A stretch of 64,000 bases of DNA from Octopus bimaculoides (taxonomy: Eukaryota), in assembly GCF_001194135.2 (NCBI RefSeq), contig NC_068982.1, forward strand, positions 115,567,428-115,631,427. Reading direction: 5' to 3'. Within the stretch, counting starts at the first letter, position 1. Each line of letters opens with the position of its first letter. The notes under the pieces were generated by a model that did no database searches, was not told the DNA's origin, and saw only the letters and a program-made list of their open reading frames with translations. Below, piece after piece: positions 9,501 through 12,500 of this stretch. A program made the position numbers and the translations under genes.

Positions 9501-12500
9501 GGTTACAAATTATTCTGTTTGCTAGAGGGAACAGCTACTAAGGTTGACTATTATAATGTTTCAAAGACTGATAAAAATATAAAGACAGAGAAAGCAACAG
9601 TGATAGTTACTTAGATGTTGAAAATATCTGATAAAATAGAACACAAGCTAGTTACTTAGTTACTCATGTATTGCAAGTAGGTAGTATCTGCAATGACTTG
9701 TGTGACCTCATTTGCAAGAGAATGAGATTTTTAGGAAGGAGTAATTATAGTGCAGCTTAAATTAGCTTCATTTTGGGTTTGTGTCAAGACCAGGAATCTG
9801 TGATGTCCTCTTTTTAATGAAACAACTGCAAGAGAAATTCTTAGCTAAGAACAAATACTAAACCTTGCATTCATAGCCCTTGTGAAGGTTTTTGACAGGT
9901 TATGATACTCTGAAGCTGAGAGGTCAGAGCTATTCAAGCTATGAGCAGGGTTGCGGTCTGCAAAATGAGAGTTAAGTTTAGCAAAGAAATAAGCATACAA
10001 GTAAGGTATACACAGGGCTTGTCTTTCAGTCCCTTCTTGTTTATTATAGTTCTCCAAGCTATAACAATGAAATTCAAGACTGGCTGGCTGATAAGTATTA
10101 GAGGAAGATTTCCAAGTGTAGAAGTAAGGCCTAAAAGTTAACCATGTGAATAGAAAAGTTTTAGTAGGAAGGAATGCAAACAGCTTTACTACTATCTTGG
10201 AAGTGGTGATGTTCAATATGCAGAAAAGGAGTCTGTAGAAACTTTGTACTGTGTACACTGTGCAAACATGGGTATACAAAAATTGTAATATGATCTCAGG
10301 GAGACTGACAGAAAAATAAATTTCCTATATCATGGATGTACAGGAATAGCTAACAGTAAGAACATCCCTTGATTTAAGTAGCAAAGAGAAATTACTGCAG
10401 AATTCAGTAGCTAGAATTACAGCAAGGTGGCAAAAGTTGAGGCTACTACTGGTTCTGCTGGAGGCAATGGACTTTTTTCTGTGAATGAAGAGCAGATTTT
10501 GTGATGATACCAATGTGTTACATTACATAATAGAAATGGACCCAGCATACTCCATTAGATGCATAATGTCAGCATGCATAAATGACAGCTGAAGTGAGTT
10601 GAGAGGAAAAGAAATGAACATTAGAAGGATCAGTTGTAGTCTGCAAAAGAGAAGACGGCATTAATACAGACATCATCATTGTTTAACGTCCATTTAACTT
10701 CCTACTTACTAAGACTTTGGTTTTTGCTCCCTAAGACCCTTTGATTCTAGACTCCCACACCCTAAACTTTGTCTCTAGTTCTGGCAGTGACTCAGCTATT
10801 AGAGCAAGGTCATCAACATAGAGCAGCTCCCAGGGGCAGTCTGTCTTGAATTCCTCTGTTATTGCCTGGAGGGCTATGATGAATAAGAGGGGCCTGAGGA
10901 TTGGTCCTTGGTGAACCCCTACTTCTACTCGGAATTCTTCACTATACTCGTTGCCAACCCTCACCTTACTGACAACATCCCTGTACAGGGTTTGTACAGC
11001 TCTTATCAACCACTTGTCTATCTCCAGTTTCCGCATTGACCACCAGATATGGGATCGGGGGATCCTGTCAAAGTCAACAAAAGCCAAATACAGAAGTTTA
11101 TCTTTGGCTGGATATTTCTCCTGCAGTTGCCTTACTGGAAATATAACATCAGTGGTGCTTCTGCCTGGTACAAAACCAAACTGCATCTTATCTAGGCTAA
11201 CTCACTCCCTAATTAGTTGGGCTATGACCCTCTCTGTAACTTTCATTACCTGATCCAATAATTTGATACTCCTGTAGTTATTTTTATCTAAAGCATCACC
11301 TTTACCCCTGTAGTAGTTGCCTATGGTGCTGCTACACCAGTCATTGGGTATGACTCCTTCATGAACTACCTGATTTATGATGCGGGTGACAAGACCATAA
11401 CTCACACCACCCGATATTTTAAGCATCTCAGTCGTGATTCCTGATGGGCCAGGTGCTTTCCCTGTCTTCATATCCTTAATTGCTTTATCTACCAGGGTTC
11501 TGTCGATTTGGGTAGCTGGTCCCTCAATTGGGTCAACCTTTGGCAGACTCTCCTCCTCTTTAAACGCAAGGGCACCATCATCCATGCAGACACATTTCTC
11601 TCCTATGACATCATGATTTTCTCTCATACTGTCTTGCAATATAAATGCTTCAGTTCTTTGGTCCTCACATTGCTGAACATTGGCAAACTTCTTTTCTGCT
11701 ACTCCCTTGGCTATATATACCTGTCTCCTAGCTTCCATTTTGGCTATCTGATACATTCTCTTGCTACCCCAACTCTTCCAAGCCTATTTCTTTGCTCTAA
11801 TGGACCTGTCTACAGTATTGTTCCATCACCATGTTACCCTAGGTCTGGAAGGGACTTTGCACTAGCCACAGATTTGGTCTGTGGAACTCAGCAAGCTGTC
11901 TCGCAGGAATTTCCAGCTGCCTTCTATGTCACAGAACTGTAGCTCCTCCTCCCTATCATCAAATTTAGACCTGTAGCTTCCTAATACAGTTTCAATATTG
12001 TTTGTATTGTGTATAATTATAGCAAGAACTATATGAAACTGCCTATATCGGTGTAAATAATGACTGAACAAAACAATAGAACACCACTTATACACATTAG
12101 AATTACATTTGCTGTGTCAATGATCACCATTTTTTTCTTTTTTATTACTTTTCATTATTTTGTTTGCTGTTCCCCATTCTCTTCCATTTTTAAAAATCTT
12201 TTGTTTTGACTATTATGTGATGTTAGTGACTCGACCATCTCACAATCTTGCAGATGTTCAGTTCTGAAATTGTGAGCCATTATGGAATCTCGCAGTACCC
12301 TGAAGATGATGAGGATGAGGTAGAAAGAAGCTTGTCCTGTGTGTGTTGGAATGACATTGATATAGCCTTACTTAGGTCTGCCTGCTTTAACAGGCATTAT
12401 TTAGGCATGACTTTTCCAGAAATCTAACCATTTTAACTTCTTACTAAAGTTTAGGAAAATAAAATTCCTCATATCAATTATTGAAGATATACTATTGTAG

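Follow-up and report, generated by a model that had tools for sequence, protein, structure and literature searches.

Introduction

Alpha-spectrin ranks among the most strongly conserved proteins of the cytoskeleton; in invertebrates it is commonly regarded as a single isoform of some 2415 residues. In vertebrates, three alternative splicing events are known for alphaII-spectrin, in addition to a constitutive insert of 35 residues in repeat 10, which harbors a calmodulin site and the calpain site Y1176-G1177, whose cleavage is regulated by the phosphorylation of Y1176 (PMC3249148, PMC8012654); this calpain/calmodulin loop is joined to helix C of the repeat (PMC8012654, PMC3249148). In this work we analyzed a stretch of 64,000 nucleotides (nt) from Octopus bimaculoides (assembly GCF_001194135.2, contig NC_068982.1, positions 115,567,428 to 115,631,427 of the forward strand; hereafter the window), which contains the 3' two thirds of an alpha-spectrin gene, and in particular a 66-nt segment (12254-12319) lying in an intron of 7.4 kilobases (kb), in which a hidden cassette exon had been predicted from the letters alone (the original prediction). 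The comparison with other animals indicates that this segment is a real, conserved, frame-preserving coding exon of octopus-type alpha-spectrin, and we consider it quite probable that it is an internal, frame-preserving cassette that is alternatively included.

The alpha-spectrin gene and the 66-nt exon

The gene lies on the + strand and was mapped with tblastn, using human SPTAN1, and with a purpose-written spliced alignment; the part within the window begins at about repeat 8 and ends with the stop codon (42280-42282). The 7.4-kb intron lies between 8965 and 16371, and the junctions of the two neighbouring exons are in phase 0 according to both the tblastn frames and the spliced alignment. 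The elements of this region are the following, a slash marking a splice junction:

8866-8965, + strand: upstream constitutive alpha-spectrin exon, ending in ALLERHQ (CATCAG) in phase 0, with the donor CAG/gtttgt
12226-12230, + strand: candidate branch point GUGAC, its putative branching A at 12229, 24 nt before the acceptor G
12252-12253, + strand: 3' splice-site AG of the 66-nt exon (cttgCAG/)
12320-12321, + strand: 5' splice-site GT of the 66-nt exon (GAG/gtagaa)
16371-16519, + strand: downstream constitutive exon of 149 nt, with the acceptor ttcag/GAACAT, starting with EHRTEIDAR

The segment 12254-12319, that is caatcttgcag/ATGTTCAGTTCTGAAATTGTGAGCCATTATGGAATCTCGCAGTACCCTGAAGATGATGAGGATGAG/gtagaaag, consists of 22 open codons, starts with ATG and is in phase 0 at both ends; on re-reading, its boundaries (cag/ATG...GAG/gtagaa), length and phase were found to be exactly those originally described. 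No AG occurs between the A of the candidate branch point and the acceptor.

In a comparison that included the proteins P0167-P0204, a phase-0 intron before EHRTEIDAR was common to the octopus, to the mollusc-type contigs and the L017 contig described below, and to many fish genomic reading frames, and it was missing in the EYRTEID-type sequences, which are probably of arthropods and nematodes. Since fish share this intron position and the EYRTEID-type sequences are without it, its distribution indicates that the position is ancient.

Conservation in other animals

The downstream exon was compared with 1.84 billion representative proteins by a search without word index. This returned short genomic reading frames, which read through the intron and continue into Q/EHRTEIDAR, and the contigs of the closest frames were fetched. 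An orthologue of the exon, with the same strand and phase 0/0, is present in all four contigs that extend far enough upstream; in L004-L007, L012 and L013 there is too little upstream sequence to compare, and L015 has no upstream exon within 10 kb. The orthologous exons, with the amino acid (aa) identity of the respective downstream exon to that of the window, are as follows:

L008 (ENA ERZ27250121), 259-330: orthologue of 72 nt, tttcag/...GAG/gtgatg; downstream exon 86% identical
L014 (ENA ERZ25069870), 5982-6068: orthologue of 87 nt, tttgcag/...GAG/gtgacg; downstream exon 78% identical
L016 (Logan SRR12548983), 7217-7294: orthologue of 78 nt, tttacag/...GAG/gtgaca; downstream exon 78% identical
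L017 (ENA ERZ17174917), 5600-5641: orthologue of 42 nt, a microexon (NYRNEIDVHYGIPQ), accag/...CAG/gttaga; downstream exon 71% identical
L014, 3626-3724: orthologue of the upstream exon
L016, 6111-6209: orthologue of the upstream exon
L017, 4949-5047: orthologue of the upstream exon

The human sequence has 70.6% aa identity on the same downstream exon, as compared with 71% for L017. In L014, L016 and L017 the orthologue sits between the same two exons; the L008 contig stops before the upstream exon, and here the orthologue lies at the corresponding distance upstream of the downstream one. The L008 contig opens with a Nextera adapter (1-52, ...GGCTCGGAGATGTGTATAAGAGACAG) and then a long CA repeat; its first 120 bases or so are unreliable, and the cassette at 259-330 is unaffected. 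In the five species CAG always precedes the exon and GT always follows it, and the lengths (66, 72, 87, 78 and 42 nt in the window, L008, L014, L016 and L017, respectively) are multiples of three without stop codons.

Two parts can be distinguished within the octopus exon:

12254-12295, + strand: conserved core of 14 codons, with the motif x-[FY]-x-x-E-I-x-x-H-Y-G-I-x-Q
12296-12319, + strand: variable tail YPEDDEDE, proline-containing and acidic, with the purine-rich GAR sequence GAAGATGATGAGGATGAG

As regards the core, the first 13 of its 14 residues are identical between the window and L008, and 12/14 and 13/14 residues are identical in L014 and L016, whereas the L017 microexon shares 6/14 (7/14 if Phe and Tyr are counted as equivalent). 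His-Tyr-Gly-Ile is invariant in all five species, and the preceding Glu-Ile pair is likewise kept. The Tyr-Gly pair singled out by the original prediction is thus, at the least, strongly selected as part of this invariant tetrapeptide. The tail varies in sequence and in length (8-15 residues), with a proline and a terminal acidic run in L008, L014 and L016, and is missing from the L017 microexon; its purine-rich GAR sequence may act as an exonic splicing enhancer.

At the nucleotide level, the first 39 nt of the exon differ between the window and L008 at five positions, all of them synonymous third positions, and in the four mollusc-type sequences the variable columns of the core number 1, 2 and 10, out of 14 each, at the first, second and third codon positions (chi-square p=0.004). 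In pairwise comparisons 76-86% of the nucleotides of the core are identical, as against 10-43% over 30 nt to each side; the limits of the conservation coincide exactly with the splice sites. Indeed, blastn of L008 against the window returned two segments only, the downstream exon (72%) and this exon (77.5%, 12245-12324), and a tblastx comparison of positions 1-30000 of the window with five loci revealed no other conserved island outside the constitutive exons. Concerning L017, the best 14-residue window of its 1166-nt intron scores 33.5 against the profile of the four other cores (15.3 +/- 3.6 in 2000 resampled introns; P=0.0005), and this window is bounded exactly by AG and GT.

It is the maintenance of frame, phase and splice dinucleotides in four other animals, and not the splice pattern, which alone would be insufficient, that leads us to regard the exon as real. 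The original prediction had proposed a hidden, frame-preserving coding exon of 66 nt and had pointed to conservation of its frame and splice sites in related species as the test of this idea; both are borne out by the four orthologues.

Searches in protein and environmental collections returned no carrier of the exon. The peptide with short flanks gave none in a word-indexed protein search, in a database without cephalopod alpha-spectrin for this region; an exact look-up of the 59-aa frame over the exon, as well as of one frame of a neighbouring long interspersed element (LINE), gave no record; degenerate DNA patterns for the exon peptide had no match in metagenome, prokaryote-genome or viral collections; and a related-locus search of metagenomes found no relative of the exon locus.

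Splice signals and chance

Position weight matrices were derived from the gene's own sites (34 acceptors and 33 donors), the real sites being scored leave-one-out. The acceptor of the exon reaches 2.4 bits, against a mean of 7.95 for real sites, and falls in the bottom 9%, whereas the donor, with 7.1 bits against a mean of 8.47, falls in the bottom 27%. The "strong extended pyrimidine tract" that had been attributed to the exon does exist:

12130-12213, + strand: pyrimidine-rich tract (79%), 40-125 nt upstream of the acceptor

This tract is matched by only 0.6% of intronic 84-nt windows and may help the recognition of the 3' splice site. It lies, however, beyond a competing AG (12225-12226) located between the T-rich tract and the exon acceptor, and the 20 nt adjacent to the acceptor AG have a pyrimidine content of 65%, as compared with an average of 71% for the real acceptors of the gene; on this point the original prediction is correct in part.

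The exon ranks best among the 196 in-frame open AG...GT pairs of the 7.4-kb intron, and yet dinucleotide shuffles of the intron yield 0.40 equally good in-frame pseudo-exons each, with at least one in 32% of them. Judged from the octopus sequence by itself, the pattern of splice signals and frame does not exceed chance, since shuffled introns give equal pseudo-exons this often, and the splice-signal argument of the original prediction, the acceptor being also weak, is not supported on its own. A second in-frame open pseudo-exon with splice scores equal to those of the candidate occurs in another intron (18773-18847, + strand); the tblastx comparison revealed no conservation of it, and it probably represents a decoy. 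As for codon usage, the log-likelihood of the exon is +4.2 bits, the last six codons (EDDEDE) contributing +10.5 and the first sixteen, whose usage is intron-like, -6.3.

These data would fit a pseudo-exon arisen by chance, or else a conserved element of the intron without coding function (a splicing regulator or an RNA gene, for instance): equal pseudo-exons are easily produced by shuffling and one is present at 18773-18847, the first sixteen codons resemble an intron and the acceptor is weak. The comparative data point the other way. In the four orthologues frame, phase and the two splice dinucleotides are maintained, and the length varies in threes only; substitutions fall at third positions (1/2/10 over the codon positions of the core, and 5/5 between the window and L008); the limits of the conservation are the splice sites; and no Rfam family, tRNA or notable tandem repeat was found within the intron. 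Nor do the copies look like contamination or chimeric versions of one sequence, since their cores diverge by 14-24% in nucleotides and their flanks are unalignable. On these sequence comparisons both the chance and the non-coding explanations, which we consider exceedingly improbable, are essentially excluded.

Cassette, alternative first exon or constitutive exon

We favor the idea that the exon is a cassette that would sometimes be skipped. As an indirect indication, its splice-site scores lie below the means of the real sites in five out of five species when evaluated with the octopus matrices (in the order of the exon lengths given above, 2.4, -4.0, 0.4, 7.2 and -4.0 bits for the acceptors and 7.1, 5.7, 5.6, 7.4 and 4.1 bits for the donors). 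Because these sites are weaker than the constitutive ones and the tail is purine-rich, inclusion might be regulated and would probably be tissue-specific. In addition, the insert is missing from P0038, a marine transcript of a relative of the L017 organism in which ERHQEHRTE is uninterrupted, and from all of the 34 junction-spanning homologues described below.

The length of the known proteins can also be considered. The alpha-spectrin of Drosophila has 2415 aa, and the insert-free length is estimated at about 2414 aa. The open reading frame of the squid nervous-system alpha-spectrin encodes 2412 aa (PMC4384741).

These observations bear on the possibility that the exon is constitutive in mollusc-type alpha-spectrins, always included, and "hidden" only because other animals are without it. 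The core is strongly conserved at the protein level in four mollusc-type species, as would fit such an exon, and the extra synonymous constraint typical of alternative exons was not seen, synonymous conservation being no higher than in the neighbouring constitutive exon. Against it stand the squid frame, which fits the insert-free length (PMC4384741), the weakness of the splice sites in all five species, the insert-free transcript P0038, and the fact that a permanent break in helix B of a single repeat would be unusual. We therefore regard constitutive inclusion as unlikely.

A different possibility is suggested by the ATG that opens the exon in the window, L008, L014 and L016: an internal promoter in the 7.4-kb intron might drive an alternative first coding exon, translated from the ATG at 12254; the resulting N-terminally shortened alpha-spectrin would consist of about the last 1050 residues preceded by a unique, conserved peptide, similarly to the short dystrophin isoforms. 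The conservation that begins at the ATG and the poor acceptor scores in several species (2.4, -4.0, 0.4) would fit this arrangement, and multiple-of-three lengths would be equally required. On the other hand, in every one of the five species the first codon is directly preceded by CAG, which, together with pyrimidine tracts in L014 and L016, points to a 3' splice site; the context of the start codon is poor (C at -3, T at +4); out-of-frame ATGs occur close upstream in the window and in L008; and the first codon of the L017 orthologue is AAT (Asn), the exon boundaries there being accag/ and /gttaga. Moreover, to our knowledge no alpha-spectrin has been described with an internal promoter. A first exon at this site is, in our opinion, very unlikely.

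The cassette reading, which we retain, has several points weighing against it. The octopus pattern taken alone is within the reach of chance and the first sixteen codons look intronic; an ATG opens the exon in four of the five species; the evidence for skipping comes from sequences other than that of the octopus; the match in L017 is short (14 codons); the phylogenetic depth of the four contigs was judged from the divergence of the downstream exon (86%, 78%, 78% and 71% aa identity); and, as described in the following sections, the likeness to the next exon is short and was noticed post hoc, and an insertion in the middle of a helix is structurally awkward, with a low-confidence loop in the AlphaFold2 model.

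As to regulation, three of the five species have Rbfox-type GCAUG motifs in the 100 nt that follow the cassette, which represents a weak lead, and none was found within 300 nt in L014 or L016. Their positions, with the distance from the exon, are the following:

window, 12405-12409 (+86): GCAUG
L008, 363-367 (+33): GCAUG
L008, 405-409 (+75): GCAUG
L017, 5651-5655 (+10): GCAUG

Origin of the exon

The core and the opening 14 residues of the next exon (16371-16412) can be aligned in register, and both follow a CAG acceptor. Within L017 the two share 6/14 aa and 25/42 nt, and within the window 4/14 aa, the pattern common to the core and to the start of the next exon being x-[HFY]-[RS]-x-E-I-[DV]-x-[RH]-x-G-x-x-Q. 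This resemblance suggests that the core arose by partial duplication of the downstream exon, that is, through the copying of its first 14 codons (two heptads) together with the acceptor site.

Exons derived from the tandem duplication of a neighbour, from which many mutually exclusive pairs descend, offer a comparable picture: the octopus core can be aligned in register with its neighbour, over a short match noticed post hoc, and a CAG acceptor precedes both segments. The arrangement differs from that of mutually exclusive exons in that only part of the neighbour was copied, the partner is fused in the 149-nt exon and the two lengths are unequal. A swap preserving the helix would use an internal acceptor after ...TFQ, and this was rejected, the Gln codon being CAA in the octopus, L004 and L016. 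Since the internal acceptor that a swap needs is missing, the exon is better viewed as an added cassette than as a member of a mutually exclusive pair.

L014 has an in-frame CAG/gtggcg (6021-6026) precisely at the end of codon 14 of its cassette, the point at which the L017 microexon stops; both 42-nt and 87-nt forms of the exon might be made there.

Position of the insert in the protein

With repeats numbered from the SH3 domain as repeat 9 (the numbering of PMC8012654), the insertion point falls in helix B of repeat 12, one third along it, and not in a loop. The original prediction had placed the peptide between ALLERHQ and EHRTEIDAR inside a spectrin-repeat helix, and the spliced alignment, an AlphaFold2 model and the structure PDB 3FB2 (human brain alpha-spectrin) all agree with this. 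In the latter, to which both flanking exons can be matched, the chain passes through ERHQ-EHRTE without interruption, and a 278-aa query retrieved 34 junction-spanning homologues, none with an insert (best identity 80%; no cephalopod alpha-spectrin in the database). The statement that no vertebrate insert is known at this junction therefore agrees with the sequences retrieved and with 3FB2.

In the AlphaFold2 model of 278 residues with the insert (mean pLDDT 85, pTM 0.72), helix A spans residues 2-35, and helix B runs from 44 to 55, is broken, and resumes at 87-102, the insert corresponding to residues 56-77. The pLDDT is below 50 at residues 66-80, acidic tail included. The next repeat of the same model has an unbroken helix B (173-205).

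Inclusion of the exon would place 22 residues inside helix B of repeat 12. The rigid three-helix bundle may then gain an exposed, largely disordered acidic loop bearing a conserved aromatic motif, which might serve as a local hinge and/or as a docking or modification site on the rod.

Comparison with the vertebrate inserts

The alternative inserts of vertebrate SPTAN1, for instance the 20-residue one after the SH3 domain, are likewise short, frame-preserving additions to the rod. That insert lies in repeat 9/10, beside SH3, whereas the octopus exon falls in helix B of repeat 12; no sequence similarity exists between the SPTAN1 inserts and the octopus exon, and the latter is found in invertebrates and missing from the vertebrate sequences examined. 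The post-SH3 position corresponds in the octopus to an ordinary intron of 646 nt (5178-5823), and the position of the vertebrate calpain/calmodulin loop to another ordinary intron (6271-6441), neither with a conserved island in comparison with L014, L016 and L017. At these two positions the spliced aligner produced forced artefacts, namely a stop-containing fake exon at 5282-5341 and a read-through at 6271-6367.

The likeness with the calpain/calmodulin loop consists in an extra segment breaking a regular repeat and carrying Tyr-Gly, which in the octopus insert is invariant in the five species and sits in a low-confidence, presumably exposed loop of the AlphaFold2 model. The differences are more numerous. 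The vertebrate loop is constitutive and not encoded by an exon of its own, whereas the octopus insert is a separate exon; it lies two repeats earlier (helix C of repeat 10 versus helix B of repeat 12); and it is followed by a basic calmodulin-binding helix, while an acidic run follows the octopus motif. BLASTP of the octopus peptide against the vertebrate loop gave no alignment at E<=100. Membership in the family of the calpain/calmodulin loop was accordingly rejected, as location, sequence and charge of the tail differ and Tyr-Gly alone is shared.

By analogy with the vertebrate loop, the insert may be subject to calpain cleavage or tyrosine phosphorylation and is a candidate parallel to it; to call it an "independently evolved regulatory switch", as was done originally, is speculation. 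As far as we could find, the exon would represent a new alpha-spectrin rod insert of a known sort, that of the short alternative inserts, at a position not described before. A literature search found no paper describing it, and automated mollusc gene models may already contain it.

The surroundings of the exon and the rest of the window

The intron that hosts the exon also contains retroelement remains, and a sister copy is found in another spectrin intron:

10700-11924, - strand: 5'-truncated LINE fragment (Pfam RVT_1, E=1.7e-10), ending 330 nt short of the exon
29681-31513, - strand: sister LINE copy in another spectrin intron, retaining the endonuclease frame

The endonuclease frame of the second copy has 83% identity to the O. 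bimaculoides "craniofacial development protein 2-like". Many repeats, at about 80% identity, are shared between the window and L003, a segment of an O. bimaculoides chromosome with another repeat copy and not a spectrin gene. Both findings mark the genome as octopus-type. Neither the window nor L003 contains a further copy of the exon region. On this ground an origin of the exon as an antisense retroelement fragment, whose tail would be the T-rich tract, was rejected.

Between 35584 and 39763 the spliced alignment gave an 18-nt exon (35959-35976, LWLLDG) and a 55-nt exon (37623-37677); the gene boundaries in this interval are uncertain, and the splice-site statistics exclude them. No evident gene follows the spectrin stop codon (42283-64000); transposon debris, CA microsatellites and several assembly gaps are found there. 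The following elements were recorded:

46.5-47.1 kb, - strand: LINE endonuclease frame
about 51.3-52.4 kb, + strand: hAT/ZBED-like frames
about 1.1-2.0, 17.9, 53, 54.4-55.2, 57.9 and 60.4 kb: runs of N

Implications

A first lesson concerns annotation: splice motifs and an open frame were within chance, and the conservation of the 42-nt core was decisive.

A more ambitious, and rather unlikely, possibility is that the cassette is an ancient regulatory module, consisting of a duplicated two-heptad segment of helix B, that it would make repeat 12 a switchable hinge, and that His-Tyr-Gly-Ile would be a site of phosphorylation, of cleavage by a protease or of interaction with a partner. Such a module, in the same doubtful scenario, would predate the split of molluscs from at least one lineage as distant as vertebrates. 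If this were true, invertebrates would possess a substrate-level control point of the membrane skeleton, functionally parallel to the calpain/calmodulin loop of vertebrates and independent of it.

An optional segment so deeply conserved, interrupting a helix in mid-rod, implies a function long maintained by selection, the candidates being local flexibility, a binding site or a modification site. Squid alpha-spectrin has 247 recoding sites due to RNA editing (PMC4384741), and cephalopods are of special interest in this respect because their alpha-spectrin, in squid, is already known to be heavily edited. The exon may thus offer a handle on how invertebrates, which are without the calpain/calmodulin loop, might tune their spectrin skeleton.

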